IMG/VR virus record: IMGVR_UViG_3300017987_000001
Span: 143,858 to 207,857 of that record
Length of the DNA: 64,000 nucleotides
Direction: 5' to 3' (one strand)
In this document: positions 43,269 to 61,628 of the stretch, piece after piece
Position numbering within the stretch: the stretch's first letter is position 1
How the letters are laid out: each line of letters opens with the position of its first letter
The notes under the pieces: model-generated
What the model was told of the DNA's origin: nothing
Database searches by the model: none
Seen by the model: only the letters and a program-made list of their open reading frames with translations
Translations under genes and position numbers: made by a program

Positions 43269-46166
43269 TTACCAGTACTTTTCAGGCACTCCGATTTGCT
43301 CTAAGCTCTCTTTCTTTGGCTTCTCACCCCATCTCAGCATGATCTCCGGATCGATACCGAAGCTGAAGTTCAGCCGGGGAACCACCGCGTTGTGCACCAT
43401 GCACAGCGGGAGCACGAACTCCACGACATGTTCGATCTGTTCCACCGGCACTTCGAGCATGACTGCATCGTGAATCGCAAGCAGGATCCGATACGCACAC
43501 CACGGATTCTGCTGCTTATAGAGCCACAGGTTGTACAGCGCCGTCGACAGCGTGTCGGCGACGACGGACTGAATCGGGAAGTTGACTGCCTCCCGCTCCT
43601 GCGCTGCCATCACGGACTCGTCGGGCGACACGAAGAAGTGTCGTCGCCGTCCGTACGGGTTCTCGATCCAGTGCGGGTGATTGCGTACACAACTCTTGCA
43701 CCAGTTCACGTAGTCGCGAACCTTGCTATAGCGTTCGTACCACGCATCGATAATCCGTTGAGCCTTGTCGGCATCCATGTTGGCCGCGCCCTTGGTTTCA
43801 CGATTGACTTGACGGGCGATAGCCTTCGCTCCGCGCTGATACGGGATGCCGAAGTTGATATTCTTCGCAGCGACGTACAGGTGCGGGAAGGCTTTCGATA
43901 CCTCCTCGTAGCTGCACGGTGCGCGAAGGATGTCAACGGCAACCTTAGCGTGGAGCTTAATGGGGCCAAGAGCATCAGCGATGAGATTCTTGTCGCCGCT
44001 GATGTAGGCAAGCCCACAGACCTCGGCCGACTTGTAGTCAGCTTCGATGAGGACGTAGCCATCAGGCGCAATCACACACGATCTGAGCGACTGAACATCC
44101 TCGCCCATGATCATCTTGTACTTGCTCTCCTGACGCTTACTCCAGTTCTGCAGGTTGGGTCTGCTCGATCCGTACCGGCCCGTCTCCTTCGTCTGGGAGA
44201 TCATGGTACGAATACGCCCGTCGGGATCGATATGCCCGAGGAGACCTTCGATGTACATGTTCGGATCGTAGGTCATGTCCTCAGGAACTTCGGTCATTCC
44301 GGCGGGGGGACGAAGGAAGTTCTTCGTCATCTGGTCGATCGTCTGGAAGTTGCTGATCATCTCGACGACCGGCTGCACCTTCTCTGGAGCGTCGGCTGAG
44401 AGCAGCTCCAGTACTTCGGAATCAACGGCAGGCTTGACACGCGCACGCTCCTTCTCGGGCAGCGACATCACGCGATCCCACGTCATGGCGGGCTTACCGG
44501 TAGACTTCACCGGCATCAGCCCGAAGCCACCGTCTTCAGGCGACCCGAACAGCAACTCCGCCTTCTGCTTGTACGAGCGCGGGTTGAAGTCCGGATTACC
44601 GACGCCCTTGCGTACGTCTTCGAGAAGCTCCTGCTTCTTCTGAACGTAACGCCAGAGCATCGACACCATACGATCTGCGTCGATGAGGATACCGTTCTGC
44701 TCCATCTCGAAGATGGGCAGATTCGCGGGCATGACGACGTTGTAGAACAGATCACGCACGCTCTCGTTGCCCGGCTGATCGAGCAAGCCGGTCAGTGTGA
44801 GGAAGCAGCGGAACGTGCAGTCGGCATCTTTCGCGCCATACGGAATGATCAGTTCGGCCGGAATGCCCATATACCCGGACGTCTTGGTTACGATCGCCGG
44901 ATGCGCCTTGATCCAGTTCTCCAGATCGTAGTCGTATCGTCCGAGCGGGGTGTAACGAACCGACAGCCCGGTGAGGGAGTGGTCCGCGCTCTCGTTCAGA
45001 AGGTGATCTGCAAGCATCGTGTCGAAGTACAGATACTTCATGAACGGAACGCCAATGTCCTCCAGCCACGGGGCGTCAGCGCGAGCGAAGTGACCGATCA
45101 ACCGCACGCCGGGCCGATCGATCAGCCGCTTCAGCTCGTGAGCCACGCCGATGAGTTCGGTGGATTCGGATGAGTTGTTGAAGACCCACTCGCCGTTCTC
45201 CTCGCGCAGCACGATAACCGCCGCGAAGCCTGCTGCCCACGAGAACTGAATCGTGCGCAGCTTGCCACCCGACTGAGGGGACTGACCACCCCACTCGCAG
45301 TCGAACGCGAAGTACTTCACATCGGACTCGATGAGCAGATCGACCAACTTGATCAGCTGCGACTGCGTCTCGATGGTGAAGTAGTTCTCGGCTTCTCCCG
45401 GCGCCGTACCCGGGGCGTCGGCCATCAGTCCTATGAACCGACGGATGTCCTCTTCCAGTCCGGGTGTGAGCGACGGCTCCCGCAGCGACTGCGCGGGATT
45501 AACCGTCCCGATAACCGAGACCTTCGTGGGGTCGTCATTGCGCCCCGTCTCCGTCGGTATCTTGCCCATCTCTTGCGGGTCGAACACGATGTTCGCACCA
45601 CGCACCGACTTCAGTGTCGCCTTCCTGCCGAAGAACGCTTTCACGGCGTCCGTGCCGAGCAGGAGCATGTACTTGGGCCGCACGATGCGGAACTCGTACA
45701 TGAGCAGCGGCAGGCAGTCCTTGATGTGGTCTGCCCTGAGATTTCTCCCGCCGTCTGGCGGGATGAAGCGACACACGTTCGTCACGTATGCCGAGTTGAG
45801 ATTCACGTTCAGGTTGGTGAGAATGCGAGTCAGCTCTTCCCCGGCGTTACCGCACAGGTTCCTGCCGTACTCGACCTCTTCGGTACCCGGACGCTTGCCG
45901 ACGATCATCACGTCGGACTTGACCGGACCATACTGACCGCTTCCCCAAACGTGACCGGGGATCATCGTTACGGGCGCGTAGGTGTGCGGCACGTCGCCCT
46001 TGCCCTTCACATCGACCACGTGAAACGTCATGACGTTATGCAGTGCGCGATCGAAGAGTCTGGACGAGGGCGTACCCAGCACGCGCGAGTTGTAATCCCA
46101 CGTGTCAGTGAACGCCAAGTCGTCGAGGCCGATCTCGGCCAACGAGACTTCGACTTCTTCACTCAT
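43269..46166 (-). CDS. polA: family A DNA polymerase with N-terminal UDG-like and 3'-5' exonuclease domains
   Basis: UDG-like VMIVGKRPG and YVTNVCRF; exonuclease FDCE, DTM, YGAKDA; polymerase TGRYGSSRPNLQN, ADYKSAE, AKNINFGIPY, VNFPIQS, IHDA. Confidence 0.93.
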   Translation of the reverse strand: MSEEVEVSLAEIGLDDLAFTDTWDYNSRVLGTPSSRLFDRALHNVMTFHVVDVKGKGDVPHTYAPVTMIPGHVWGSGQYGPVKSDVMIVGKRPGTEEVEYGRNLCGNAGEELTRILTNLNVNLNSAYVTNVCRFIPPDGGRNLRADHIKDCLPLLMYEFRIVRPKYMLLLGTDAVKAFFGRKATLKSVRGANIVFDPQEMGKIPTETGRNDDPTKVSVIGTVNPAQSLREPSLTPGLEEDIRRFIGLMADAPGTAPGEAENYFTIETQSQLIKLVDLLIESDVKYFAFDCEWGGQSPQSGGKLRTIQFSWAAGFAAVIVLREENGEWVFNNSSESTELIGVAHELKRLIDRPGVRLIGHFARADAPWLEDIGVPFMKYLYFDTMLADHLLNESADHSLTGLSVRYTPLGRYDYDLENWIKAHPAIVTKTSGYMGIPAELIIPYGAKDADCTFRCFLTLTGLLDQPGNESVRDLFYNVVMPANLPIFEMEQNGILIDADRMVSMLWRYVQKKQELLEDVRKGVGNPDFNPRSYKQKAELLFGSPEDGGFGLMPVKSTGKPAMTWDRVMSLPEKERARVKPAVDSEVLELLSADAPEKVQPVVEMISNFQTIDQMTKNFLRPPAGMTEVPEDMTYDPNMYIEGLLGHIDPDGRIRTMISQTKETGRYGSSRPNLQNWSKRQESKYKMIMGEDVQSLRSCVIAPDGYVLIEADYKSAEVCGLAYISGDKNLIADALGPIKLHAKVAVDILRAPCSYEEVSKAFPHLYVAAKNINFGIPYQRGAKAIARQVNRETKGAANMDADKAQRIIDAWYERYSKVRDYVNWCKSCVRNHPHWIENPYGRRRHFFVSPDESVMAAQEREAVNFPIQSVVADTLSTALYNLWLYKQQNPWCAYRILLAIHDAVMLEVPVEQIEHVVEFVLPLCMVHNAVVPRLNFSFGIDPEIMLRWGEKPKKESLEQIGVPEKYW

Positions 46167-47286
46167 ACGACCTCCTATGGCAGGCGAGCTGGAACGCTCC
46201 CGTGTCGAAGATCGGGTGCTTATAGCCTGCGCGGTCGGCGTACTTGAGGACATAGACCCACAAGTCCTCCGACCAGTAGCTGCCGGGATCCTTCTCCGGC
46301 AGGCGTACCTCCAGCATGCCCCATCGACAAAGCGAGGTGAGCGAGTCACGAAGCTTCGTGTACTTCTTTCGCTTGTCCTCTGTATCCATCACGTCAGCAT
46401 CGGACATCAGGATGATCCCTGTCTCGCCCCACGCTGCGTGAATCAGTTGACGCTGACGGTCCCCGGCGCTATCTCCGAAGATGTTCACGCCCTGACCGCC
46501 TACCGACCACACGTCGGTAATGCCCTCCATGATCACGCCGACCGGATACTGGCTGGCCCAATCATAGTTGTAGAGCACCTGCGTCTTGCGCATGCCCGGC
46601 ATCGTGAAGTACTTCGGCAGGTTCTCGGGGACATTGTCACCGATGTACCGTGCCTGATACCCCATGAGTCTCGACGATTGCCGGATCGGGAGAATGATCC
46701 TGTCATCTACGAGCGGATGAGGATCATTCGGACAGTACGCCACCTGATGAATCTCCACGAGCCGCTGCACGTTGAAACCCCGTGTCGTTTCGAGGTAGTA
46801 CCGTGCAGGGTGATGCGGATCGAGCTGCGTAATGGGAACCAGCTTCTCGGGGAGCGTCGGGACGACAGGCTTGGGAGCCTCGCCCAGATGAACCGGCAGC
46901 GACACAGTATGTCGCAGCAGCGGACTGATCAGCTTACGCAGATCCTCCTGCCGCACGCGCTTGTCGTATCTGTCTGCTGCCCGGTTCAGGTCGCAACCGT
47001 CGTTGAAGCAGTTCGCCAGTCCGAGTCCGAACTTCACCTTCGTAGCCGGATCTTCGGTATCCCAGCGATGATTGATCCAGAGTCGGAACCGCGTGTCTCC
47101 GCAAAATGGACAACACACGCGGTACTCTTCGCCGTGATAGTCCTTATCGATCACGATCGTCTCACGCTGCGTGATGAAGTCAGGCCGTACCGTGTAGCGC
47201 ATCGCTTCACCCTCCTTGGCGATCTTCACGCCGGAGGGGAATGCAAGCTTGAGCGCATTGAAGAGCTGTGGATTCAGCGGCATCAC
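46159..47286 (-). CDS. DNA primase (Zn finger + TOPRIM)
   Basis: CPFC, MEGITDVW, DAD. Confidence 0.88.
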   Translation of the reverse strand: MMPLNPQLFNALKLAFPSGVKIAKEGEAMRYTVRPDFITQRETIVIDKDYHGEEYRVCCPFCGDTRFRLWINHRWDTEDPATKVKFGLGLANCFNDGCDLNRAADRYDKRVRQEDLRKLISPLLRHTVSLPVHLGEAPKPVVPTLPEKLVPITQLDPHHPARYYLETTRGFNVQRLVEIHQVAYCPNDPHPLVDDRIILPIRQSSRLMGYQARYIGDNVPENLPKYFTMPGMRKTQVLYNYDWASQYPVGVIMEGITDVWSVGGQGVNIFGDSAGDRQRQLIHAAWGETGIILMSDADVMDTEDKRKKYTKLRDSLTSLCRWGMLEVRLPEKDPGSYWSEDLWVYVLKYADRAGYKHPIFDTGAFQLACHRRSYE

Positions 47287-48749
47287 GCAAAATCCTTGCT
47301 CTGCTCGTAGTTGCTTCTCACCTTATCCTCCGCTGATGTGTCCTCCTCTCCGGAATCACCGTCTTCGTTGAAACTATGAACCTTGTCGGACTCAACGAAG
47401 CCGCGTCCCTTCTGGTAGGTCATGTCCTTGTCGACGATATCAAATCTATTGAACTCACCCACCATGCGCGCCACGATATCCTGCTTCTTGGCGTGGCGAG
47501 CCTTCGAACCGACAATCCAGCAACGACCGCTCTCGTCAGCGGTTCCGATGGCGAAGCAGTACGAGAGCAACCACGCGAAGCTGCCAGCCTCGGCGCTGTT
47601 GAACCACTGCGGCTTGCGCCCCGGCGACTTCTTCGACTGCTCGGTACTCAGCTGCTGGAGTATTAAGAAGTTGATCTTGTACTTCGTTGCCATCCCTTTG
47701 TACGCATCAAGTAGATCATTTGCGAACTGCCGTTCAGGCTTGCCACGCTTATCCGACTCGGAGGCAGCGCGCGACACAGGAATCCACATCCAGTCGATGA
47801 CGACCAGTCGTGGTTTCTGCCCAGCGGCAATGCTCTGCCTGATGCGCTCTTCAATTTCGATCGGCGCCCAACCATCGGACGAACGATCGATTAGCGACAC
47901 GTACTGCTTGCAAGCGAAAGAAGCCCTCTTAACAGCATCACGCGTCTGCTCGTCCAAATCACCAACACGCTTGCCTTCCAGCTTCTCACGCGCAATACGA
48001 CCAACGCACGAAATCAGGCGTGGACGCAGCTCGTCCGGCGAGGTCTCGTACGTGAAGTACAGCACATATTGCTTGCGCGCCGCACACCCACCGGCGAGCT
48101 GGAGCGCCAGCGTAGTCTTGCCTCCGCCCGTCGGGCCGAGGATTCCGAGTACGTCTGACGGGAACGTCCCGCCGTTCATCAGCAGGTCGATCACGGCAGT
48201 ACCGAGCGGCTCACGCTCTTCACCGAATACTGTGTCGTCATCGACATCGAACGGATCGATCTCATACATGTCGCTGACGTGCCGCTTGCGGTATTCGCCT
48301 TCGATCAGCTCGTGAACCTTCGCCGCGTCTCCGTGCGTCGTGCTGAACTGGCCAACTGCATTGAGGTACAGCCGACCGAGGAACGCCTTGATAAGCTCCT
48401 TTCCGTACTTCGGTGTCAGTGTCGCCACGTCCACCGCATAGATCTCATGAATGAGGTTGGTCGCACGCTCGTACAGTACCGGCTCGACAATCCCCTGCGC
48501 CCGCATGATCGCGGGGCAGATGTCGGCGAGGTACTGCGCGGGCGGCTGCTCGTTGTACTTCTCCCAGTACGCCTTGGCGGCGATCCAGACGATCTGGAAC
48601 TCGCCTTCGGTAGCCGGGTCGAAGTCCTGTGGATGCAGCTTGAGCAACGCTGTCGGCGATACCTCGTGACAGCGAATCGCGTAGGTGAGCAGTCGGACCA
48701 GAGCTTCGCGCCCTTTGAACTCGCGAACGAGATCGGGCAACAGACCCAT
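47283..48749 (-). CDS. DnaB-like replicative helicase
   Basis: GPTGGGKTT, FTYE, VVIDW, LQQLS. Confidence 0.88.
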   Translation of the reverse strand: MGLLPDLVREFKGREALVRLLTYAIRCHEVSPTALLKLHPQDFDPATEGEFQIVWIAAKAYWEKYNEQPPAQYLADICPAIMRAQGIVEPVLYERATNLIHEIYAVDVATLTPKYGKELIKAFLGRLYLNAVGQFSTTHGDAAKVHELIEGEYRKRHVSDMYEIDPFDVDDDTVFGEEREPLGTAVIDLLMNGGTFPSDVLGILGPTGGGKTTLALQLAGGCAARKQYVLYFTYETSPDELRPRLISCVGRIAREKLEGKRVGDLDEQTRDAVKRASFACKQYVSLIDRSSDGWAPIEIEERIRQSIAAGQKPRLVVIDWMWIPVSRAASESDKRGKPERQFANDLLDAYKGMATKYKINFLILQQLSTEQSKKSPGRKPQWFNSAEAGSFAWLLSYCFAIGTADESGRCWIVGSKARHAKKQDIVARMVGEFNRFDIVDKDMTYQKGRGFVESDKVHSFNEDGDSGEEDTSAEDKVRSNYEQSKDFA

Positions 48750-48751
48750 AG

Positions 48752-49294
48752 CTAGCCCCCTTCGAGCGGCAGCATGTCTCCGAGTATCGCTTTGTAGAGA
48801 GGTTCGTCACCAATCGCACGCTCCGCGTCAGCGCGGAGTCCGCTCGCGAGATCGGTCAATCCTCCATGGTGCGCAAGAACATAGCGCACCACCGTCCCAA
48901 TTTCAAGGGTGGGATCTGCCAAAATGGAATCGAGAGACCAGCCGAGAGATGTCCGCTGGCGCACGATACCCAACTGGATATCGAGCTTAACCTGCAGCTG
49001 TCTACGCCGATCCTCCGCTTTGTGGGTCGCGTTCTGCAGGTAGATCTGTACCGACTTCGGCGAGGCGATCTGCCTCGGATACGCGGTAGGCCGCGTGGTC
49101 GTGTAGAAGTCGTAGATCCAACGAACGTAATGTGCGCCGTCCAGCCCCTTGTCGATGAGCGACTTGGCGAGCTGGGTCCAATACTTCTCGTCGTTTGGAT
49201 TCACCCGATACTTGGGGCGAGTCAATCGGCACGTTGACGTATATATGTCGCGCATCCTCGTGGCGAGGCGCTCGACTTCTTCAATTGTCGGCAT
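48752..49294 (-). CDS. hypothetical protein in the replication module
   Basis: Lies between the two helicases. Confidence 0.7.
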   Translation of the reverse strand: MPTIEEVERLATRMRDIYTSTCRLTRPKYRVNPNDEKYWTQLAKSLIDKGLDGAHYVRWIYDFYTTTRPTAYPRQIASPKSVQIYLQNATHKAEDRRRQLQVKLDIQLGIVRQRTSLGWSLDSILADPTLEIGTVVRYVLAHHGGLTDLASGLRADAERAIGDEPLYKAILGDMLPLEGG

Positions 49295-49296: not shown

Positions 49297-50742
49297 CTAT
49301 CTTCCAAAGCGCTTCGGAGGTACGTGTACTTCCCAGCCGCGTTTCTTGTACGCGCGTACACGATCCTTCGCTCTACGGTTCAACGTCTTGTCCCAATCAT
49401 CCATGTAGTCGATCAGCAAGCCGTGGCTCTTGTCGCTGTGCGTTCGTGACAGTCGTCCGGGCACCTGCATGTTCTGGATGTCCGACGAGATTCCATCGCC
49501 GCGAATGAGCACCGTCAGCTGCCGAAAGTCGACGCCCTGATTCCAGCACGTCGCTATCGCGCGCCGCAGCTTGCCCTGCTCGAACAGTTCCTGCAGCTCT
49601 TCCTGCTGGTGCTTGCTGATCGGGTGAACCCCCGGTTCGATCACGCCCTCCTTCTCGTACTTGTCACGCAAGTCCTTCCGCATCGTGCTGTAGACAAATA
49701 CGAAGTCGGGGAGATACCGGAGAAGCTCAAGCCCGTGCTCGACGGTCGTAACCCGAATCAACAGCTGCTCGCCGTTCTTCGAGTGCTCCCGCGCGTCAGC
49801 GGCGATCTGCTGGTTGCGAATCTTGTTACGCCACAGTCCGTGTCGGTTCTTCGCCGTCGTGGTCTTCTGATGAAGCGTCGGACCCTGCGGGACCGTCTTC
49901 ATGATGACCCTGATCGGCGTGACGTTGCCTTTCTCTACGGACTCGTCGTAGTCGGATTCGTGGATGATGGGACCGAACAGCATCTCGACAGCCAGATCGG
50001 CGCTGTCGGATCGCATGTTCGCCGTAGCAGTGAAGCCGAACATCTTCGGACCAGCGGCGGACAGGAAGCCGAGCATGTAGCCCGTCTGCGGACCACCGGC
50101 CGTATGGACCTCGTCGTAGAGGATGAGCTTTGGCTTGGTGGTCGCCGCGCTCGCCGCCATGAGGGAGTTGCGAATACAGACAGTGATACGGCGGTTCAGC
50201 TGCTTCTTGCCGCCGCCAACCTGTCCTACCTCATGTAACGGGAACAGACCGACCAAGCGGTCCCTGATGTTCTTGGCTTCGAAGCGCCCCGCGACGACGA
50301 TGAGGATCTTCGTGTTCGGGTACATGCGACATACCTGACAGATGACCCATGACTTGCCGTCGCCGGTAGGTGCGACAATTTGACCGCGCTCCGCAACCGC
50401 GATCTTGGCGAGGATCTCGTCTTGGCCGGGCCGGGGCTTGCCGATGAACTCGAACTTCGGCTGCTCAATCTCCAGCGGCTTGAGATCCTCAATTGTATAC
50501 GGGATGTTGTAGCTGATGAACGCGTTCACGATGCGCGGTACGAGTCCGGCATGCGTGATCATGAAGCGACGTCCGTGTTCATCCTCCCGTATGTCGTAGG
50601 ACTGTAGATCTACGTATACAGCCTTACTGGCGTTTCCTCCGACCTGTTGTCGGCGGGTGCATTTCAGCACCGACTGCAAGATTTCCTCGTGAGGCGGGAT
50701 GACCTGTACTACGCCGCCCGCCTTTCTGATGACTGCCCCCAC
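49297..50742 (-). CDS. SF2 helicase (UvsW-like)
   Basis: APTGDGKS, YDEVH, GFTAT, QGVD, QVPGRLSR. Confidence 0.88.
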   Translation of the reverse strand: MGAVIRKAGGVVQVIPPHEEILQSVLKCTRRQQVGGNASKAVYVDLQSYDIREDEHGRRFMITHAGLVPRIVNAFISYNIPYTIEDLKPLEIEQPKFEFIGKPRPGQDEILAKIAVAERGQIVAPTGDGKSWVICQVCRMYPNTKILIVVAGRFEAKNIRDRLVGLFPLHEVGQVGGGKKQLNRRITVCIRNSLMAASAATTKPKLILYDEVHTAGGPQTGYMLGFLSAAGPKMFGFTATANMRSDSADLAVEMLFGPIIHESDYDESVEKGNVTPIRVIMKTVPQGPTLHQKTTTAKNRHGLWRNKIRNQQIAADAREHSKNGEQLLIRVTTVEHGLELLRYLPDFVFVYSTMRKDLRDKYEKEGVIEPGVHPISKHQQEELQELFEQGKLRRAIATCWNQGVDFRQLTVLIRGDGISSDIQNMQVPGRLSRTHSDKSHGLLIDYMDDWDKTLNRRAKDRVRAYKKRGWEVHVPPKRFGR

Positions 50743-51178
50743 GGGGACTTACCTCCAACACTTTGAAGTGGCCAAACGAGCCCAGCTTCCAACCATAGGG
50801 ACTGATGCCTATGTAGTCACCAATCGCCTCCAGCAGCTCGACGAACTGGCGGACATGCATCTTCCCCGGAATAGCGAACTTGACTTTGATGGTAGCGCCT
50901 GCATCGAAGCCTTCGTGGGTTTTGCAGTCGTCATCGCCCTTACCGTAACGCCGCTCGATCTTCGTGATCGCTCCTTCCACTGGCGGCGCAGCGCGAATCT
51001 GGTCTACGTACTGGTAGTATCGACTGATGGCATTAGCCGCTTGCGCAAAAGCGGCCCTCCACCACGAAGGCAGGAAGATGACTCGACCGCTGTCGTCTCT
51101 CAACATGCGATCGAAGTCATCGCGTCTCACGTTCCCGAGACACGGGGTCGTGAACTTCAGCTTGACTACGAGTTCCAT
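50624..51178 (-). CDS. stand-alone RAMP (Cas7/Csm3-like) protein
   Basis: N-terminal LKFTTPCLG and C-terminal Gly-rich loop IGISPYGWKLGSFGHFKV. Confidence 0.55.
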   Translation of the reverse strand: MELVVKLKFTTPCLGNVRRDDFDRMLRDDSGRVIFLPSWWRAAFAQAANAISRYYQYVDQIRAAPPVEGAITKIERRYGKGDDDCKTHEGFDAGATIKVKFAIPGKMHVRQFVELLEAIGDYIGISPYGWKLGSFGHFKVLEVSPRGGSHQKGGRRSTGHPASRGNLAVGAEMHPPTTGRRKRQ

Positions 51179-51455
51179 TGGGTTGCTCCGCAGCCTTGAG
51201 CTTAGCTTGTTCGACGGCGTTCTGCAAGCTGATAGCAAGAGATTTAGCTTCGTCGAGGGACAGCATCACCATATCAGTGTACGGTGTGCCGTCCCTCAAG
51301 ATTTTGAGGATGTGTCGAATACGGAATGCAAGATCACGTCTTCGTGAATGACCCTGTTGCCAGAAGGCCAGCTGGACGAAGCCGTCTTCGTCTGGTTCGA
51401 CCGCTACACCTTCTCCATAACAGGCGCAGCGTATGACTTCCACATTTTCAGGCAT
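51117..51455 (-). CDS. hypothetical protein
   Basis: AAAGGA RBS after tRNA-Leu. Confidence 0.6.
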   Translation of the reverse strand: MPENVEVIRCACYGEGVAVEPDEDGFVQLAFWQQGHSRRRDLAFRIRHILKILRDGTPYTDMVMLSLDEAKSLAISLQNAVEQAKLKAAEQPNGTRSQAEVHDPVSRERETR

Positions 51456-51467: not shown

Positions 51468-51544
51468 TGGTGCCGGGAGCGGGATTCGAACCCGCAACAC
51501 GCTGGGTTTAAGCCAGCTGCATCTGCCGATTGTGCTACCCCGGC
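51468..51544 (-). tRNA. tRNA-Leu(UAA), short variable loop
   Basis: GCTGG-CTTAAAC-CCAGC; CCA. Confidence 0.88.
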
Positions 51545-51545
51545 T

Positions 51546-51623
51546 TGGTACCAAGGACAGGATTCGAACCTGCACTGAGTGGCTCTTGAAACCACCGCCT
51601 CTGCCAGATTGGGCTACCTTGGC
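51546..51623 (-). tRNA. tRNA-Leu(CAA), short variable loop
   Basis: GTGGT-TTCAAGA-GCCAC; CCA. Confidence 0.88.
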
Positions 51624-51660
51624 ACATAGTTGCACGCGTCCAACTATCCCACCTGCTCAT

Positions 51661-51719
51661 AGATTATTCGCGAAGTTCTCAAAGTCAAGGTTGCCATCGC
51701 GACCCATGTGCGCTAGTCT
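51661..51719. promoter_or_regulatory. back-to-back promoters (minus TTGACT-16-TAATCT; plus TTGCCA-17-TAGTCT)
   Basis: Spacers counted by hand; next to the palindrome at 51630. Confidence 0.55.
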
Positions 51720-51756
51720 GACTGACCGGTCACTCTTTGGGGGCAAAGGGGGATTC

Positions 51757-52110
51757 ATGGACTGCAGGGGATTCTACCGTCGTGTCGTCGATCATCCTGA
51801 ACTCGAATGGCTTGGCTCCGTCGAGGGGCGCACACCGGAAAAGGACGCAGTGCTTGTTCGCTGTGCGCCTACCGGCTACGCGTTCAGCGTAACGATCCCG
51901 GCAATCGCGGACAACGACTGGCAGGTACTCGAAGACGTTCTGTTCAGTCGACGTTCCGCGCGGATCATGACACACGTTACGCGCATCGTCGGCTACTACA
52001 GCCAGATCCAGAACTGGAACCACTCCAAGGTGGCTGAGCTGCGCGACCGGCACAAGGGCAACTATGGTGTGCCGGACGAGTCGCAGCAGCTGCCTATTGC
52101 TGCCGACTAG
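51757..52110 (+). CDS. small protein with NrdD-like C-terminal glycyl-radical motif
   Basis: TRIVGYYSQIQNWNHSKVAELRDR; the only convincing plus-strand CDS. Confidence 0.75.
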   Translation: MDCRGFYRRVVDHPELEWLGSVEGRTPEKDAVLVRCAPTGYAFSVTIPAIADNDWQVLEDVLFSRRSARIMTHVTRIVGYYSQIQNWNHSKVAELRDRHKGNYGVPDESQQLPIAAD

Positions 52111-52113
52111 GGG

Positions 52114-52192
52114 TGGTCGGGGTGACTGGATTCGAACCAGCGAACCTCTCGGACCCGAACCGAGCGCTCTGTCCAAGCTGAGCTACACCCCG
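52114..52192 (-). tRNA. tRNA-Pro(CGG)
   Basis: CTCGG-TTCGGGT-CCGAG; CCA. Confidence 0.92.
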
Positions 52193-52743
52193 TCCCTTGT
52201 CGACAACTCCAGCCAGCGCATCATCGGGATGCGCAGGCCGCTACCGTGCTCCGAAGTCCATTCGAGCGCACGCTCGTGGGTCATTCGCTCAAGCGCCCAC
52301 GCGAAGCTGGCGTGGAAGCGTCTATCTGCGATGAAGCCACAGTCAAGCTCAAGAAACCAGTTGAGCGAGCTTCCCGACACCGGATACGAAGGACTACCAC
52401 TCCGCAGGAAGTACCGCCATACCGCCTCACGTACTGCCTCATAGTCCGGCCGCTCGTACCAGCGCTTCCAACGCTGCTTTGCGTCTCCGTTCCGAGATGT
52501 GATATGGGCGTTGAGAAGCAACCCATCACGGTATGCGCGGGTGAGCACTCCTCCGAACTCCGTCCTCGACACGTAGTGATGGTACTGATCGTGCAGCGCA
52601 ACGAGCAGCGCTTCTGTGGAGTAGAGCTTCTTGGGATCCTCGTCGAGAATGCGGAGGATCAGATCCAGTGTGCGTCTTCGCTTCTTCGTGTTCGTCTTCT
52701 GCTTCGCTCCCGTCGAACGACGGCGCGGGGCAGTCGACCTCAT
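52183..52743 (-). CDS. hypothetical protein
   Basis: Stop codon is nt 8-10 of tRNA-Pro(CGG). Confidence 0.6.
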   Translation of the reverse strand: MRSTAPRRRSTGAKQKTNTKKRRRTLDLILRILDEDPKKLYSTEALLVALHDQYHHYVSRTEFGGVLTRAYRDGLLLNAHITSRNGDAKQRWKRWYERPDYEAVREAVWRYFLRSGSPSYPVSGSSLNWFLELDCGFIADRRFHASFAWALERMTHERALEWTSEHGSGLRIPMMRWLELSTRDGV

Positions 52744-52762
52744 AAGTTCCCTTTCATGAGAA

Positions 52763-52838
52763 TGGCGCACCCAGCAGGACTCGAACCTGCAAGCTCTTGG
52801 TCCGCAACCAAGTGTCCTATCCATTAGACGATGGGTGC
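52763..52838 (-). tRNA. tRNA-Arg(GCG)
   Basis: CTTGG-TTGCGGA-CCAAG; CCA. Confidence 0.9.
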
Positions 52839-52846
52839 GCCGACTC

Positions 52847-53362
52847 CTACGCCCGACCGAAGTACGGCGTCCAATCCGCGTAGCCAAGGCGTACGGCTCG
52901 CTCACGGATCAGTAGTGCGCGGGTTGGTACCCACGGCTCGCGAAGGAGCTTCATTCCAGCCTCCTTCGGCGTGCGGTCATCCTTGGTGTTGTTGCACGGC
53001 TTGCATGCAGCAACAACGTTCTTCCACGAATGCTTCCCGTCACGACAGAGCGGGAGGACGTGGTCGATGGTGGCCGAGTTGTCCGACAGGTGCCGCCCGC
53101 AGTACTGGCACGTGAATCCGTCACGGGCAAGAACGTTCTTCTTGTTCAGCCCAATGCGCCGACTGCCCGGGATCACCACGTACTTGACCAGCGCGATGAC
53201 GCTCGGCAGCGGGAAGCTCTGCGTCGCCGAATGCACCTCATCGCTCCAGTACTCGTACACATCAACCTTCTGCTTGAGCATCAGCCCAAGCGCCCGCGTC
53301 CAGTGAATCATAGATAACGGCTCACCGTTCGCGTTCAGAAGCAGCACCTTTCTCTGCTGCAT
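52847..53362 (-). CDS. HNH endonuclease (McrA-like)
   Basis: CQYCG, TIDHVLP, ACKPCNNTK. Confidence 0.92.
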   Translation of the reverse strand: MQQRKVLLLNANGEPLSMIHWTRALGLMLKQKVDVYEYWSDEVHSATQSFPLPSVIALVKYVVIPGSRRIGLNKKNVLARDGFTCQYCGRHLSDNSATIDHVLPLCRDGKHSWKNVVAACKPCNNTKDDRTPKEAGMKLLREPWVPTRALLIRERAVRLGYADWTPYFGRA

Positions 53363-53383
53363 GACGTCCTCCTTCCAAAGTAG

Positions 53384-53461
53384 TGGTCGGGACGAGAGGA
53401 TTCGAACCTCCGACCTCCTGCTCCCAAAGCAGGCGCTCTAGCCAAGCTGAGCTACGTCCCG
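53384..53461 (-). tRNA. tRNA-Pro(UGG)
   Basis: CCTGC-TTTGGGA-GCAGG; CCA. Confidence 0.93.
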
Positions 53462-53868
53462 TCCTTTCCATGTAGCCGACGCTCTCTCTTCCACACCGTG
53501 GTGAACGTACCATGGTACGGATCCAGCTCCTGCATGCACTTGTCGATGAATGGTTTAATCGTGTTCATCATCGGCTGTGCCTGAATCAGGTCCATGATGT
53601 CCGGGAACTTGCGTGCCCCTCCCTCAACGTGATCCATCTGCAGGCAGCGCTGGCACTGCTCGATGCGCACATCAGGCTCTTCTCCGGTCATGACCTTCCA
53701 TCGGTGTCCGAATACCAAGCATATGATCTTGTGAAGAAAGCGCCAGCGCGAACCCCAGTAGAGTCGCTCACGCGTGACTGGCTTGCCAATCGTTGGAAAG
53801 CAGAACTTCTCGAATGGGTTCACCGTTACTTTCGGCGTAGACTTGAATACCTCAAGTGGTGGACTCAT
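53452..53868 (-). CDS. hypothetical protein
   Basis: CLVFGHRW...CQRC; stop inside tRNA-Pro(UGG). Confidence 0.6.
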   Translation of the reverse strand: MSPPLEVFKSTPKVTVNPFEKFCFPTIGKPVTRERLYWGSRWRFLHKIICLVFGHRWKVMTGEEPDVRIEQCQRCLQMDHVEGGARKFPDIMDLIQAQPMMNTIKPFIDKCMQELDPYHGTFTTVWKRERRLHGKDGT

Positions 53869-53878
53869 GATACCTTTC

Positions 53879-53952
53879 TGGAGCCGAGAGCGGGAGTCGA
53901 ACCCGCATCTGCCGATTACGAATCGGCTGCTCTTCCGTTGAGCTACCCCGGC
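53879..53952 (-). tRNA. tRNA-Thr(CGU)
   Basis: GCCGA-TTCGTAA-TCGGC; CCA. Confidence 0.92.
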
Positions 53953-54311
53953 TCCCTCTTACCCATCTTGTGCGCACACATGTCGCAGTCTGGGTTATCG
54001 CAACCGCTGCAAGGCTCCGTATGGCTGCTGACGTATAGGTCGCAGAAGGTTTCTCTGTACAACCCATGCCGTGGGCAGTCAGTGTTATCGCAACTGACGC
54101 AGTTACGTACTGACGTCTGCGCCAGTAGCGCTTCGACCTCCTTGACACGCGACTCCGCTGCCTCAGCGCGTGCGACGGCCTTTAGCTCGGCGGCTCTTGC
54201 TTCGCGCATCGCCGTGATGCAGCGGGCTGTGGCTTCGTTCTCTGCGCGTCGCAGCCGCTCGCTTTCGGCGAGCTGCGCGCGGACCTCGTCGATAGAGTTC
54301 TGCTCGCTCAC
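53943..54311 (-). CDS. coiled-coil + Cys-rich hypothetical protein
   Basis: CVSCDNTDC, CSGCDNPDC; stop inside tRNA-Thr(CGU). Confidence 0.6.
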   Translation of the reverse strand: MSEQNSIDEVRAQLAESERLRRAENEATARCITAMREARAAELKAVARAEAAESRVKEVEALLAQTSVRNCVSCDNTDCPRHGLYRETFCDLYVSSHTEPCSGCDNPDCDMCAHKMGKREPG

Positions 54312-54507
54312 TTGCTGTCCTTATCGGGATCCCGTATCGCTTCGAGGCTCTCCATCCATGAATCGCACAGTAGAGCTTCGTCGGAAACGATCCGTTGTGC
54401 GAGTACGAGAACAGCACCTCTGCGATATTGTTACACAGATCACACCGACGTGTCGAGATGTCGAGCATCCATGTCAACTCGCGAACCTCACGAAATCTCA
54501 GGTTCAT
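54163..54507 (-). CDS. hypothetical protein (3' part overlaps the next gene)
   Basis: CDLC...YCAIH. Confidence 0.4.
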   Translation of the reverse strand: MNLRFREVRELTWMLDISTRRCDLCNNIAEVLFSYSHNGSFPTKLYCAIHGWRASKRYGIPIRTASERAELYRRGPRAARRKRAAATRRERSHSPLHHGDARSKSRRAKGRRTR

Positions 54508-55333
54508 CGGGGATCTTCATTCCCTTCTGCTTCATGTATCCGCGAATGATCTCGTACTCCGAGGAGAGTACGCCATTCACGAAGTAGTTCCAGCTGTTCG
54601 CAGTCGTCAGGATGGTGCGCCAGAGCGAAACACGCATCCCGTAGATCGAATAGATCGGTGCGGTTTCGTACTCGTCGAGCTTCGTGAAGCTCGCGTCGAT
54701 CTCCTTCGCCAGCTTCTCGAACTCGTCCTGTGCCGGCTTCCAGTCACGACGGCGTGTGATCGTGCTGACACGTCGAAGCTGTACGTACCGGACGTTCCTG
54801 AACTGGCTGATGTACTGGATCAGGTCCAGCACCTCGGGCGCGTTGTTCTGCGTCACAACGATAGCCATGCGCAGTGGCACGGTGATCTTCGGAATGAGCT
54901 TCTCCCATTCGGGCATGCTACGGCGGCCAGTAAGGAAGAAGAAGCGATCCGGGTCACGCGTAAGCATCGTCAGCCCGACCGCGTCCTCCGTGCACGTTGT
55001 ACACGCGTTGAAGAGGGCAAGATCGGGGATCATGCCATTGCTGCGCACGCCGACGTAGAAGCCCTGCTCTTTCAAGTAGTCCACGAGTTCGTGAATGTAC
55101 TTGTAGCAGGTCGGGTCGGTGTTCTGCCCCGTGATGTACAGCTGCTTCACGAGGCCGTTGCGGCACCACCCGAGGAATTCCTCGAATCGTGACCACGCAT
55201 CGAAGTGGACCTTGTTGAAATCGTACTTCGAGAACTCCTTCTCCAGATCCTTGCCCAAGCAGAAGTTGCAGTCGAGCGTGCACTTCCCGAGCAAGTTGAT
55301 ATTGGCGAATGTCGCAGCGCTCCTACGCTGCAT
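54488..55333 (-). CDS. radical SAM protein
   Basis: CTLDCNFC (CxxxCxxC), YITGQNTDP, VRSNG. Confidence 0.85.
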   Translation of the reverse strand: MQRRSAATFANINLLGKCTLDCNFCLGKDLEKEFSKYDFNKVHFDAWSRFEEFLGWCRNGLVKQLYITGQNTDPTCYKYIHELVDYLKEQGFYVGVRSNGMIPDLALFNACTTCTEDAVGLTMLTRDPDRFFFLTGRRSMPEWEKLIPKITVPLRMAIVVTQNNAPEVLDLIQYISQFRNVRYVQLRRVSTITRRRDWKPAQDEFEKLAKEIDASFTKLDEYETAPIYSIYGMRVSLWRTILTTANSWNYFVNGVLSSEYEIIRGYMKQKGMKIPDEPEIS

Positions 55334-55880
55334 CGTCGCCTTCCACTTCCGACATTCGGATCCTGCGCCCTATGCCGCCACGTCCGGGCTGAAAGCGTTC
55401 CGCCTTCGCGTTGAGCGTCAGCTCTACCTCATGCACGCCTGAGAATAGTTCGGTGATCAGCCGGGCCGCCAGCATAACGTCAGCGACCTCTTCCAGCATG
55501 CGCGCTCTGCCGATGCGCCCGCGCCGGTAGTGATTCATGGCCGTCAGCAGTTCGCCCATCTCTTCGGACGCGATATGGAACGCATGCTCCATGGCCTCTT
55601 CGCCATAGCCCTCTCGGTGGCGAACCAGTGCCTTGCGCACGTGCACGCTGTTCACGTCGAGGCGAGGCATGCAAAACTCGCGAGCGGTCTCACCCTCAGC
55701 CAGCTCGTACGTCAATGCGCCGCAATGCGGGCACTGACCTGACGGTACTACGCCGTTCGGCGTGAGCCGCTCCTGTATGTCGCTGATCATTTCGAGGCTG
55801 CCGCCCCAGATCAACTCGCCACAGTCATCGCACATGTGCTGTGCGTGAGAGTTGGCTTCCTGTATGTAGCACTCCGTCAT
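55323..55880 (-). CDS. Zn-ribbon + MazG-like NTP pyrophosphohydrolase
   Basis: CDDC/CPHC; SEEMGELL...EEVADV. Confidence 0.75.
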   Translation of the reverse strand: MTECYIQEANSHAQHMCDDCGELIWGGSLEMISDIQERLTPNGVVPSGQCPHCGALTYELAEGETAREFCMPRLDVNSVHVRKALVRHREGYGEEAMEHAFHIASEEMGELLTAMNHYRRGRIGRARMLEEVADVMLAARLITELFSGVHEVELTLNAKAERFQPGRGGIGRRIRMSEVEGDDAA

Positions 55881-55895
55881 GGAGTTCCTTTCGTG

Positions 55896-55969
55896 TGGAG
55901 CCGGGACCGAGAATCGAACTCGGGTGCCTACCTTACCAAGGTAGTGCTTTACCACTAAGCTATCCCAGC
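55896..55969 (-). tRNA. tRNA-Thr(GGU)
   Basis: CTACC-TTGGTAA-GGTAG; CCA. Confidence 0.92.
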
Positions 55970-55975
55970 TCCGTG

Positions 55976-56242
55976 TTACGGAACGACGGTGAACTCTTCC
56001 ATGTGATGCGTGTCACAGAACGCTTCAACGATCAGCAGCATGTCCGCTAGATCGAGGTTGCTGTCGTAGTAGAGTCCTTCGTCGGCTTCGTGCTGAAGCA
56101 TCTCCAGATCCACATGAATGCTGGAGACTTCGTATTCCGGACGGAAGCCTTCGAGAAGCGCGAAGGCGTCCGGCTCGGAAAACCCCAGTTCCTCAGCGAA
56201 CCGGATCAACTCATGAAACTCTACGGTAACGGTAGCCCGCAT
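55976..56242 (-). CDS. acidic hypothetical protein
   Basis: AGGAG RBS. Confidence 0.65.
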   Translation of the reverse strand: MRATVTVEFHELIRFAEELGFSEPDAFALLEGFRPEYEVSSIHVDLEMLQHEADEGLYYDSNLDLADMLLIVEAFCDTHHMEEFTVVP

Positions 56243-56258
56243 GCGGGTCTCCTGTGAT

Positions 56259-56336
56259 TGGCACCCCCGGTAGGACTCGAACCCACAGGTTGTCCGGATA
56301 GAAGCCGGATGCCTTATCCAGTTTGGCTACGGGGGC
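56259..56336 (-). tRNA. tRNA-Arg(UCU)
   Basis: TCCGG-CTTCTAT-CCGGA; CCA. Confidence 0.9.
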
Positions 56337-56800
56337 TAGAAGGTACGCTTGAACCACGTCGAGATCTTGTCGGCGGTGATGTGCAGCAGTGCACTCGCCT
56401 CAAGTCCGGCAAGCGCAGAAACGAGCGACCACTTGTGTGTGATCGCCCACTCCTGCAGCTCAGGTAGCGACGTCTTCTCCAGTAGAACGAACGGAGTGAG
56501 CACCAGCGCCACGAGGGGGCTGATGTAGATGAGCCGCGCCAGCGTGCCAATGATCGGCGTGTGGCTGAGCAAGCCGCGATGAGGCACGTACTTCTGGTAC
56601 AACCGCCAGTACCATGAAAGCCAGCCCCAGTGCTTGTATGGCTCCGATTCGAGATCGAGGTCAGGATTGAAAGCCAGAGCCGCGAACAGAAAAGCTGAAA
56701 TGCCGGGCAGTGCCAGCACGTCAAAGAAGTAGATCGCCACAGGTGCAGCGATAAGTACCATCATGACGTTCAGCTTGTTGTGTCCGCGATCATCTGGCAT
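56336..56800 (-). CDS. DUF2227-like metal-binding membrane protein
   Basis: NPDLD, PHRGLLSHTP, LHITAD. Confidence 0.75.
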   Translation of the reverse strand: MPDDRGHNKLNVMMVLIAAPVAIYFFDVLALPGISAFLFAALAFNPDLDLESEPYKHWGWLSWYWRLYQKYVPHRGLLSHTPIIGTLARLIYISPLVALVLTPFVLLEKTSLPELQEWAITHKWSLVSALAGLEASALLHITADKISTWFKRTF

Positions 56801-56802
56801 TG

Positions 56803-57261
56803 CTACTCCTCGAAACCGTCGACCAAATCGGACTCCTCATAGCCATCAAGGATGTCCGGTCGCGTCGGAACCTCGATGATGTTGTCGCTTGCTGCCAAGT
56901 GATGCGCAGCAGCCCAATCCTCAACCAGCTGTCGACGCTCCGGATCCCATTGTTTGATGATGTCAATTGGCACGTCGTAACTGACACACAACAGTAGATC
57001 GCGCAGCACCTCAAAAGAGTTGGCACCCTCGGAGGGATTTGAACCCCCAACCTCAGGTTCGAAGCCTGAGATGATATCCGTTTCACCACGAGGGTATCTC
57101 TTATCCAACTGCTCCAATAGAAGATCTTCCTCGACATAATACGGGTCGTATCCGCCGGGAAACGCATTGCCGAGAAGCTGCATGAGCCGCAGATCCGGAT
57201 TGTTCAGCCAGATCCTGCGAATCTTCGATAAGACCTTGTTGATTCTTCCAGCGGGTCTCAC
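56803..57261 (-). CDS. hypothetical ORF reading through tRNA-Arg(UCG); may be two genes
   Basis: RINKVL...IWLNNPDLRLMQLL...YYVEED; no stop before or within the tRNA. Confidence 0.5.
   Translation of the reverse strand: MRPAGRINKVLSKIRRIWLNNPDLRLMQLLGNAFPGGYDPYYVEEDLLLEQLDKRYPRGETDIISGFEPEVGGSNPSEGANSFEVLRDLLLCVSYDVPIDIIKQWDPERRQLVEDWAAAHHLAASDNIIEVPTRPDILDGYEESDLVDGFEE
57021..57095 (-). tRNA. tRNA-Arg(UCG)
   Basis: TCAGG-CTTCGAA-CCTGA; CCA. Confidence 0.88.
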
Positions 57262-57274
57262 GCTGTTCCTTTCA

Positions 57275-57352
57275 TGGTCGGGATGAGAGGATTTGAACCT
57301 CCGACCTCCTGACCCCCAGTCAGGCGCGCTAACCAAACTGCGCTACATCCCG
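57275..57352 (-). tRNA. tRNA-Pro(GGG)
   Basis: CCTGA-CTGGGGG-TCAGG; CCA. Confidence 0.93.
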
Positions 57353-57355
57353 AAG

Positions 57356-57429
57356 TGGTGTGGTAACGGAGAATCGAACTCCGGCCTCGACGTTGGCAAC
57401 GTCGTGTACTGCCACTATACGATTACCAC
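57356..57429 (-). tRNA. tRNA-Gly(GCC)
   Basis: CGACG-TTGCCAA-CGTCG; CCA. Confidence 0.88.
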
Positions 57430-57674
57430 TACCTTTGTTCAGCGCCGACGTGGTCTTCGTGCGGCGTGTCCACCCAGAAGACCTTCTCCATCGGTATCCG
57501 TCTGACGATCGGGCGTCCCCATTCATCCTTGTCGGGTAGCTCGATGCAGAAGCATCCTGCCTTCACGTAGAAGCGCCGCACGTCCGGGTACCGTTTCGGC
57601 GTACTCGCTGGGTCGAATACGAACTCCACCCAGTACGGCGCCTTCTTCTTCGCTTTCATATCCCAAACGTCCAT
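57429..57674 (-). CDS. hypothetical protein
   Basis: Last base of the TAG is G1 of tRNA-Gly. Confidence 0.55.
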   Translation of the reverse strand: MDVWDMKAKKKAPYWVEFVFDPASTPKRYPDVRRFYVKAGCFCIELPDKDEWGRPIVRRIPMEKVFWVDTPHEDHVGAEQR

Positions 57675-58798
57675 TTCGCCACGTCTATCGCCTTTGGATC
57701 ACCGATGGCCTTCTTCGGGTCGTCCGAAAGCTTGACCACCGGGACGTTGTCGATCTCGACCAGCTTGATGACGATGTTGGCTGATATGGTGCCGGGCACG
57801 TCGTTCGTCAGATTCGTACCGATCCCGAATGCGACCTTGGTCTGCTGAGCGAACTCGCGCTGAAGGCTGATGCACTTCGGCACGTCCAGCGAGTCGCTGA
57901 AGATGATGGTCTTCGACATCGGATCGACGCGTAGCCACTTGTAGTGATTGATCATCCGCCGCGCGAACTCCTTCGAGTTACCGGAATCCTGACGGACACC
58001 GTCGAACAGCCGAGCAAGCTTGCCGTCGAAGTCCTGCAGGAATGCGCTGGTGCCGAACGTGTCGGGGAGCGCGATGCCGAGATCGCCCTCATAGACGTCG
58101 TTCCATGCCTCCAATGCGAACTTGTTGGCGTGTCGCAAACCTACCAGCGCGGAAATCGCTTGGATCCACTCGTGCGCCATCGTACCGATGGGCTTGACCC
58201 CGTGCTTCATGGCGAAGTGTACGTTGCTCGTTCCGATGAAGTTCGGGAACTTCTTCAGCGCTCCTACGACCATGTCCTGCATGTGGTACGAGTAGCGCCG
58301 CCGCGTTCCGAACTCGGCGAACCGGCAGTCTTCGGCAAGCAGCATGCCCGCCTTCTTCAGCGCCTGCTCCTTCTGCTCGTCCCAGTTGGGGCGAGGCTGC
58401 TGCTGCGCCATGATTTGCTCGGTGACGATCGCGAGCAGTGGCACCTCCCAGTAGATAGTTTCGGCCCACAGGCCACTGATCTCGATCTCCGTACCAGCGT
58501 CGGTCGGGGTGATCTTCACGAGGTGCGGATTCGGCTGAAAGTGCTCCAGCCAGTCGATGTACCAGCCTTCCAAGAAGGGGCACTTCTCACGGAGGAACAG
58601 CGACTCCTTGTCGGTCAGCTTCGCGCGGCTGTAGCCCCACATGTGAGAGCTGACGTACTTCGCCATCACCTTCGTGACGGGCTGATGAGCATTTCGGTTG
58701 ACGAACCTGTACGTAGCCTGCGCCTTGGGGAACTTCTTGAGGACAGCTTGCCCCATCGTAAGCTTGTACAGGTCGGTATCAAGGATCGAAGGTTCCAC
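57656..58798 (-). CDS. pncB: nicotinate phosphoribosyltransferase
   Basis: LDTDLYKLTM, EFGTRRR, GTSN, GTMAHEW, VRQDSG, FSDSL, FGIGT, KLSD. Confidence 0.93.
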   Translation of the reverse strand: MEPSILDTDLYKLTMGQAVLKKFPKAQATYRFVNRNAHQPVTKVMAKYVSSHMWGYSRAKLTDKESLFLREKCPFLEGWYIDWLEHFQPNPHLVKITPTDAGTEIEISGLWAETIYWEVPLLAIVTEQIMAQQQPRPNWDEQKEQALKKAGMLLAEDCRFAEFGTRRRYSYHMQDMVVGALKKFPNFIGTSNVHFAMKHGVKPIGTMAHEWIQAISALVGLRHANKFALEAWNDVYEGDLGIALPDTFGTSAFLQDFDGKLARLFDGVRQDSGNSKEFARRMINHYKWLRVDPMSKTIIFSDSLDVPKCISLQREFAQQTKVAFGIGTNLTNDVPGTISANIVIKLVEIDNVPVVKLSDDPKKAIGDPKAIDVAKWTFGI

Positions 58799-60203: not shown

Positions 60204-60220
60204 AACTTCCCCTATCTTGT

Positions 60221-60295
60221 TGGAGCCAGCGAAGGGAATCGAACCCCCATTTTCGGATTACAAAACCGACGTAATGGCCGTTATACGACGCTGGC
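60221..60295 (-). tRNA. tRNA-Thr(UGU)
   Basis: TCGGT-TTTGTAA-TCCGA; CCA. Confidence 0.88.
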
Positions 60296-60300
60296 TCAGT

Positions 60301-60888: not shown

Positions 60889-60907
60889 TGAGTTGTCCTT
60901 GAAAGAG

Positions 60908-60984
60908 TGGAGCACGCAGCGGGATTCGAACCCGCACCTTGAGCTTGGAAGGCTCGTATGCTAGCCGTTAAACACCATGCGTGC
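60908..60984 (-). tRNA. tRNA-Gly(UCC)
   Basis: GAGC-CTTCCAA-GCTC; CCA. Confidence 0.9.
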
Positions 60985-60987
60985 GAT

Positions 60988-61118: not shown

Positions 61119-61126
61119 GATAAACG

Positions 61127-61202: not shown

Positions 61203-61212
61203 ATCGTCTGTT

Positions 61213-61536: not shown

Positions 61537-61548
61537 AGTAAATGTCAA

Positions 61549-61626: not shown

Positions 61627-61628
61627 AC

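Follow-up and report, generated by a model that had tools for sequence, protein, structure and literature searches.

A very small RAMP protein of predicted Cas7/Vipr-like fold in the replication block of jumbo phages

A stretch of 64,000 nucleotides from the IMG/VR virus record IMGVR_UViG_3300017987_000001 (positions 143,858 to 207,857, hereafter the window) carries a small gene, here termed X, that encodes a previously undescribed, very small RAMP protein of about 145 amino acids, which by its predicted fold and the sequence of its glycine-rich loop is closest to Vipr, the minimal RAMP of phage VIPR systems, and then to the CRISPR Cas7 proteins Csm3 and Cmr4. X is a conserved member of a replication and recombination gene block, present as a single copy in complete genomes, and lacks two features on which guided recognition of DNA by Vipr depends, its alpha-bundle and the aspartate that reads G. 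The interpretation we favor, tentatively and at less than even confidence, is that X is a guide-less nucleic-acid-binding RAMP that would serve phage replication or recombination without a repeat-coded guide. The window represents the last 64 kb of a complete virus record of 207,857 bp with a GC content of 59.7% and terminal repeats. Gene X and the structural elements of its product are as follows.

50624-51178, minus strand: open reading frame (ORF) of X, ATG at 51178, 184 amino acids
50741-51178, minus strand: residues 1-146, the core, a predicted minimal RAMP (Cas7/Vipr-like) domain
Residues 2-9: strand beta1
Residues 37-51: helix-1
Residues 72-91: hairpin (72-77 / 85-91)
Residues 96-102: strand
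Residues 109-123: helix-2
Residues 124-137: G-loop, 14 residues, glycine-rich
Residues 138-145: beta4, the last strand
50624-50740, minus strand: tail of 38 basic, low-complexity codons plus stop, inside the helicase ORF in another frame

An AlphaFold2 model of X was built on 32 homologues and reached a pLDDT of 93.3 and a pTM of 0.87. DSSP analysis of this model assigned the beta-alpha-beta-beta-alpha-beta topology of an RRM/ferredoxin-like fold to the core. Foldseek searches against the PDB yielded 160 matches at E<=1e-3 (best E 6e-7, TM score about 0.6), the top 50 of which were all Cas7-type RAMPs (type VII Cas7, Csm3, Cmr4 and Cas7-11), and structure matches in the AFDB clusters, BFVD and the ESM Atlas concurred, the top VIA matches being RAMPs too. 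With 33 close homologues and 334 family clusters at E<=1e-3 besides this model, X is a real protein far beyond chance, and its modeled fold is a RAMP/Cas7-like RRM fold. A preliminary description of the window, made from the sequence alone, had given exactly these coordinates for the gene and had recognized a RAMP from an N-terminal strand and a glycine-rich loop, naming the lack of an RRM/RAMP fold as the outcome that would speak against it. Both motifs were located, LKFTTPCLG at residues 7-15 and the stretch GISPYGWKLGSFGHFKV at residues 124-140, and the modeled RRM fold and its Cas7 matches agree with that proposal. The fold is not an OB fold, and tests for SSB, gp32 and gp2.5 proteins (PF00436, PF08804 and PF10991) were negative for X. 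No match to X was obtained in Pfam, PHROGs or PADLOC; the Pfam family RAMPs (PF03787) matched none of 114 family members at E<=10 and nothing in the genome either.

In an alignment of these 114 members, residues G124, S126, P127 and G136 are invariant or nearly so, and the invariant or near-invariant residues of X sit in elements that have been shown to bind RNA in Vipr structures. The short hairpin, a possible counterpart of the RAMP thumb, bears R76, Y78, H88 and E89. A conserved catalytic aspartate following beta1 was not found, as D23 and D28 are kept among close relatives only and neither is present in the columns of at least 90% conservation in the 114-member alignment.

VIPR (Viral Interference Programmable Repeat) systems consist of phage-encoded minimal RAMPs (Vipr) which polymerise on vrRNAs and silence DNA targets (three 2026 preprints, among them bioRxiv 10.64898/2026.04.26.720920 and 10.64898/2026.04.26.720927). 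The vrRNAs comprise 9-16 YNNGG units (VIPR preprints), and VIPR were proposed in 2026 as viral ancestors of the CRISPR RAMPs. When the 114-member profile of X was compared with all PDB sequences, the single relevant chain was 36pp_D, 'SUSP1 Vipr protein', with an E value of 0.05 and an alignment spanning helix-2, G-loop and beta4. Profiles were also aligned by hhalign with SUSP1-type Vipr and with the type encoded in locus L010, which belongs to a complete 169-kb phage that likewise bears X.

X family with SUSP1-type Vipr: 94.2%, E 1.1e-7, 41 columns, C-terminal only (helix-2, G-loop, beta4)
X family with L010-type Vipr: 56%, E 1e-4, 39 columns, C-terminal only
Control, SUSP1-type with L010-type Vipr: 96.9%, E 1.9e-10, 166 columns, full length

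Vipr proteins are the sole detectable sequence link of X. All five AFDB entries behind the discovery of VIPR (X1U2U4, A0A0F9A1L0, A0A661D0E2, A0A1F4YLN4 and A0A2D6XG06) are among the top 26 AFDB matches of X, with TM scores by query of 0.60-0.67. A model of the L010-type Vipr recovered the Cas7 structures matched by X, with weaker scores (best E 9e-5), and X is therefore no less Cas7-like than a true Vipr. The X family is basic like Vipr (median pI 9.4), but it is distinct from and smaller than Vipr, to which it is linked via the G-loop module.

The genomic setting of X was compared in 20 X-bearing loci besides the window, 17 of which were checked on DNA by tblastn/hmmsearch (L001-L012, with the pair L002/L003 counted once, L018, L019, L022-L024 and L098) and three from called genes (L099 and two loci without DNA); beyond the DNA checks, four gene tables gave this order as well. 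In every one of the 20, X adjoins or lies just upstream of a ResIII helicase gene, down to 24-29% identity of X. The stand-alone RAMP coupled to a superfamily 2 (SF2) helicase, as it had been described from the window, is hence a conserved arrangement across related phages. The gene order is SbcC-like ATPase, X, ResIII helicase, a protein of about 180 amino acids, DnaB, primase and a fusion of uracil-DNA glycosylase with PolA. The SbcC-like gene is found upstream wherever the sequence reaches, as seen in L001, L010, L011, L012 and L099, and in the phage of the window it lies across the circular junction at genome positions 2945-5044; one TAA was noted inside the SbcC-like match. The lineage carrying this block comprises jumbo phages of roughly 170-210 kb. 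In the window, the block contains the following features.

49297-50742, minus strand: SF2 helicase (ResIII domain), 481 amino acids, XPB/Rad25-like and more distantly UvsW-like
48752-49294, minus strand: 180-amino acid protein, possible gp59-like helicase loader; as a lead, the nearest ESM Atlas cluster has PF08993 T4_Gp59_N, score 0.93
47283-48749, minus strand: DnaB-like replicative helicase (Pfam DnaB_C 2.1e-14, PHROG 19)
46159-47286, minus strand: DNA primase (PHROG 47, E 4.2e-33)
51468-63927, minus strand: 31 tRNA genes and small ORFs between X and the SbcC-like gene (ARAGORN, Rfam)

The helicase matched Pfam ResIII at 2.6e-10 and PHROG 16 'DNA helicase' at 3.6e-35, and its PDB matches included archaeal XPBII (6p4f, E 1.4e-13) and T4 UvsW (2oca, E 4e-4). 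The gp59-like candidate is syntenic in L002 and L004-L006.

According to the interpretation that we favor, X would bind single-stranded RNA or single-stranded DNA via Cas7/Vipr-type surfaces. The predicted contact residues are WWR 39-41 at the start of helix-1, G124, S126, P127, Y128 and G136 in the G-loop and the four hairpin residues named above (R76, Y78, H88 and E89). X may assemble head-to-tail like Cas7 and Vipr and would act together with the downstream helicase, with no dedicated repeat-coded guide, in DNA replication or recombination, where it could for example coat or stabilize displaced strands, R-loops or primers. We count in favor of such a role that no single-stranded DNA-binding protein of the SSB, gp32 or gp2.5 type is recognizable by Pfam in the genome. 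Several observations weigh against it. The undetected SSB may be another unrecognized protein, and X is basic, in contrast to classical acidic-tailed SSBs. In the related record L020 (79% complete), the SbcC-like gene is directly followed by the helicase gene and no X was found in the record; X is therefore not indispensable to the module. No X was found in L021 (52% complete). Prediction of a complex of X with the helicase on matched 11-row alignments gave a score of 0.00, which counts neither for nor against binding. Finally, two of the 18 X loci with DNA (L010 and L002) have vrRNA-like arrays in the kilobase preceding X, on its own strand, and these two relatives keep an RNA-guided role alive.

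The alternative that survives best, which we nevertheless consider unlikely on balance, casts X as effector in a divergent RNA-guided system of the VIPR type, in which the SF2 helicase would be the Vap and the guide would be supplied in trans, be non-canonical or have been lost here. An RNA-guided effector with an unrecognized guide had already been suggested for X, and one part of that suggestion fits the published Vipr relatives (bioRxiv 10.64898/2026.04.26.720920): the closest sequence relative of X is Vipr, and VIPR types with predicted helicase accessory (Vap) genes have been published. In addition, canonical Vipr and long YNNGG arrays occur beside ResIII/Helicase_C helicases in loci L084 and L069, the helicases being distantly related to that of the window (22-27% identity). 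In L084, arrays of 13-15 units (3736-3945) lie on the strand opposite vipr (about 3974-4549) and the helicase gene follows at 4989-7541, while L069 has its helicase gene at 1708-3309, arrays of 4-8 units at 3408-3512 and vipr at about 3565-4152. On the other hand, the SF2 helicase adjacent to X is embedded in a conserved replisome block.

The other part of the suggestion fares less well, since the structures needed for guided recognition are missing from X and its genome has no vrRNA-like or other short-period array. In cryo-EM structures of Vipr, an alpha-bundle cradles the skipped target base (VIPR preprints). This element, which holds the target strand, is absent from X, in which DSSP places a long helix and a further helix of 4 residues between beta1 and the following strands, whereas several helices (35-38, 52-60, 67-71 and 77-87) make up this segment in the model of the L010-type Vipr. 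The essential residue D177 of SUSP1 Vipr contacts the first G of GGY through a hydrogen bond (VIPR preprints); in the hhalign register it aligns with the invariant P127 of X, and R179 aligns with G129. H17 of SUSP1 Vipr aligns by eye with N16 of X, which is not conserved. Stacking on the second guide G is the task of an aromatic residue (W178; Y176 in P. fulva); it is retained as the invariant Y128, which speaks for a guided role. As a set, the GGY-reading residues of VIPR (H17, R138, D177, W178 and R179 in SUSP1) are not reproduced in X.

Arrays were sought on both strands of the complete 207,857-bp genome. No YNNGG runs of at least four units and no period-5 GG excess were found. For periods 4, 5, 7 and 8 no window with at least two fixed columns was detected, and the matches at period 6 were coding repeats. 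The best relaxed array score of the genome was 25/36 and thus under the shuffle maxima of 26-27. All four positive controls (SUSP1, L010, L069 and L084) yielded their arrays, at relaxed scores of 31-36; in SUSP1, 12 units were found upstream of vipr and more downstream. As background, one 4-unit run was the only other run of at least four units in 627 kb of unrelated helicase loci. Six other X-bearing jumbo-phage genomes, 88-100% complete, were likewise free of (YNNGG)6 with one mismatch allowed. The absence of cas genes and CRISPR arrays, which had been noted for the window, extends to the complete genome, where no RAMP Pfam match was present either. Spaced repeats at 105-106, 127 and 133 kb of the genome were considered as a CRISPR array and rejected as coding tandem repeats. 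Those at about 105,025-106,286 (G000:C1, minus strand, outside the window) comprise some 40 tandem 30-nt coding repeats for the decapeptide PTGDPSVITG, and those at 127.1 kb and 133.1 kb are further coding repeats. A canonical Vipr was not found in the genome, as the best tblastn match (E 0.2) was spurious and located inside an HNH endonuclease ORF. Rfam recognized only tRNAs in the window and no family in L010 6000-7600.

The two relatives with arrays differ in their layout. In L010, a 194-amino acid canonical Vipr (6282-6866; E 3e-8 with SUSP1 Vipr in BLASTP), a run of six YNNGG units (6889-6918) and a hairpin are located immediately upstream of X and the helicase gene, such that this phage carries both RAMP types side by side; a second array is present at G004:C1:8131-8165. 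Elsewhere, homologues of the L010-type Vipr are encoded in unrelated phage surroundings that contain neither X nor this helicase, and the adjacency in L010 therefore looks like a VIPR cassette inserted in a variable region upstream of X. In the pair L002/L003, X is 64% identical to X of the window, and the nearby tRNA genes follow the window's order. Three vrRNA-like arrays, listed by their L002 positions and also present in L003, lie up to 900 nt upstream of X.

L002 5131-5190, X strand: array 1, directly after tRNA-Pro(cgg)
L002 5476-5545, X strand: array 2, after Leu-caa, between two tRNA-Leu genes
L002 5641-5715, X strand: array 3, after tRNA-Leu(taa)

Each has 12-15 units at a period of 5, the YNNGG pattern being degenerate in some units, and the three score 30-33/36, like the canonical controls; no canonical Vipr was found in the 12.5 kb of L002, which favors a guided X. 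The corresponding two tRNA-Leu genes of the window are directly adjacent, without an intervening array. Arrays interspersed with tRNA genes are not among the array architectures known to us from the VIPR preprints, and the layout suggests that guides could be matured by tRNA-processing enzymes. Targets of the L002 and L010 arrays were sought by the published pairing rule with one skipped base in the genome of the window's phage and in all available loci, and nothing exceeded the order-shuffled controls, a result that does not help the guided reading.

A more speculative extension of our preferred interpretation, which we regard as unlikely, is that X represents a guide-independent state of RAMPs, i.e. 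a protomer of about 145 amino acids that coats RNA or single-stranded DNA within the phage replication and recombination machinery and hands it to an XPB-like helicase. A replisome accessory protein of phages would then resemble the ancestor type for the repeat-coded Vipr and, after it, for the Cas7 backbones. On this view, the tRNA-flanked arrays of L002 would be an intermediate or a re-acquired guided state.

It is very unlikely that X is a counter-defense decoy, a mimic of Cas7 or Vipr that poisons host type I/III CRISPR complexes or rival VIPR filaments by co-assembly or by soaking up guide RNA. In its model X does appear as a RAMP protomer and nothing more, catalytic and target-binding additions being absent, at least one related record does without it, and phages contest VIPR components, for instance through solo vrRNAs redirecting Vipr (10.64898/2026.10.15.759431). 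However, X is single-copy with deep synteny down to 24% identity, it has no PADLOC or Acr-type association, and the aspartate that reads GGY is lost. Anti-defense genes are typically patchy and island-borne in their distribution, and the fixation of X in the replication block instead of a variable accessory island speaks against an anti-CRISPR decoy. That X is a metal-independent endoribonuclease of the Cas6 kind, with phage RNA such as the adjacent tRNA-rich transcript or RNA primers as its substrate, is hardly probable at all, because the best structural matches are Cas7 and not Cas6 and because the tRNA adjacency is not conserved, with no tRNAs nearby in L001, L006, L011, L012 and L099.

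The junction of X with the helicase gene is compact, and three successive genes (the 112-amino acid ORF listed below, X and the helicase gene) overlap out of frame. Their remaining features are the following.

51185-51188, minus strand: Shine-Dalgarno sequence GGAG of X, 6 nt upstream of its ATG, read from the sequence
50752-50756, minus strand: Shine-Dalgarno sequence GGAGG of the helicase gene, 9 nt upstream of its GTG and within the last core codons of X
51117-51455, minus strand: upstream small ORF, 112 amino acids, its end overlapping the start of X by 62 nt

The small ORF shares 46% identity with an ORF of L002 that has the same 62-nt overlap with X. As had been observed in the preliminary description, the fold ends where the helicase gene begins in another frame: residue 146, the last of the core, ends at base 50741, one base from the helicase GTG (50742-50740), and the tail continues for 38 codons and a stop, so that the ORFs overlap by 119 nt. 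Among 33 close homologues, residues 1-146 are well conserved, whereas the tails vary from 0 to 55 amino acids and are of low complexity, unalignable and without conserved columns; the 38-amino acid tail may be a by-product of the overlapping gene layout. The N-terminal 35 residues of the helicase from the GTG are kept even in a relative with 36% overall helicase identity, which makes the GTG start credible. Spacing between X and the helicase gene ranges from -119 (overlap) to +978 nt across loci. A frameshift fusion of the two genes, which the preliminary description had left for testing, is not supported, in view of the helicase gene's own GGAGG and GTG, its conserved N-terminus, five loci in which the genes are 1-978 nt apart and the lack of conservation in the tails. 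Where the genes overlap, in six loci, their frame relation is always +1, which shared ancestry explains. An assembly error at the junction was rejected, since zero substitutions and zero indels were seen in Logan contigs from four public DNA runs on sediment and seawater, of which some possibly represent the window's own source sample; no RNA sequencing run was among those listed.

Of the 32 tRNA genes in the window, those in the block next to X span most amino acids. The block includes an HNH endonuclease ORF (52847-53362) and a radical-SAM-like protein (54488-55333) that remained below the Pfam cut-off. A tRNA with a CTA anticodon (amber suppressor, labeled 'Pyl' by ARAGORN) is encoded at 29279-29353 of the window (minus strand) and at 4642-4716 of L004 and hints at possible TAG read-through or recoding. 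A weak match to the RecA family (E 3.9e-5, below cut-off) was obtained at 40325-40618 of the window (genome 184182-184475, minus strand) in a frame of 407 amino acids, which could encode a recombinase of the UvsX/RecA kind belonging to this module.

When 1.84 billion representative proteins were searched with the family profile, 334 clusters were assigned to the X family at E<=1e-3, and the members listed are small stand-alone proteins of about 110-260 amino acids. Members whose source was checked all stem from JGI, ENA or Logan metagenomes and viral contigs, and none from NCBI or UniProt. No match to X was obtained by tblastn in 50,697 GenBank phages and no confirmed match in 185,579 representative prokaryotic genomes; a single 35-residue match in a Nitrosomonas metagenome-assembled genome was not confirmed by the family hidden Markov model. 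Given that the family is seen only in metagenomes and viral contigs and matches no GenBank phage, it is probably outside the NR-based VIPR census.

These findings bear on the question where RNA-guided RAMPs came from. The X family is smaller than Vipr, usually without arrays and wired into replication genes rather than a conflict locus. If X binds nucleic acid without a code, it is a testable candidate for the role of RAMPs before RNA guidance. If it is guided, it would stand for a VIPR type not described before and characterized by an XPB-like helicase; one relative would add guide arrays flanked by tRNAs, the guides of which might be matured by tRNA-processing enzymes in L002-type phages. 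Either way, X stands for an abundant, unannotated protein family of jumbo phages for which the three databases searched hold no model.

Among known systems, the Cas7-family RAMPs of class 1 CRISPR effectors (Cmr4, Csm3, type VII Cas7 and the domains of Cas7-11) share the fold, but X is much smaller and lidless, its short hairpin is the candidate thumb, its family has no conserved aspartate in the loop between beta1 and helix-1, and its genome has neither cas genes nor a CRISPR array. Vipr (SUSP1 Vipr, PDB 36pp) is likewise a phage-encoded, stand-alone minimal RAMP with an RRM core, a G-loop and a hairpin and without cas genes; the T-x-P-x-L motif after beta1 is common to both, and some VIPR types have helicase neighbors as well. 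X is about 50 amino acids shorter and is fixed in a replication block, whereas the gene for Vipr belongs to a small locus of two genes with long intergenic regions on either side. The archaeal XPB-Bax1 pair resembles the arrangement in the window in that the helicase is XPB/Rad25-like and a small partner gene lies immediately upstream, as in bax1-xpb; Bax1, however, is a nuclease with a Cas2-like domain and not a Cas7-like RAMP, and it is absent among the fold matches of X. As a whole, the block around X resembles the UvsW/gp59 module of T4, i.e. a T4-style set for recombination-dependent replication with SbcCD-like protein, SF2 helicase, possible gp59-like loader, DnaB-type helicase and primase.

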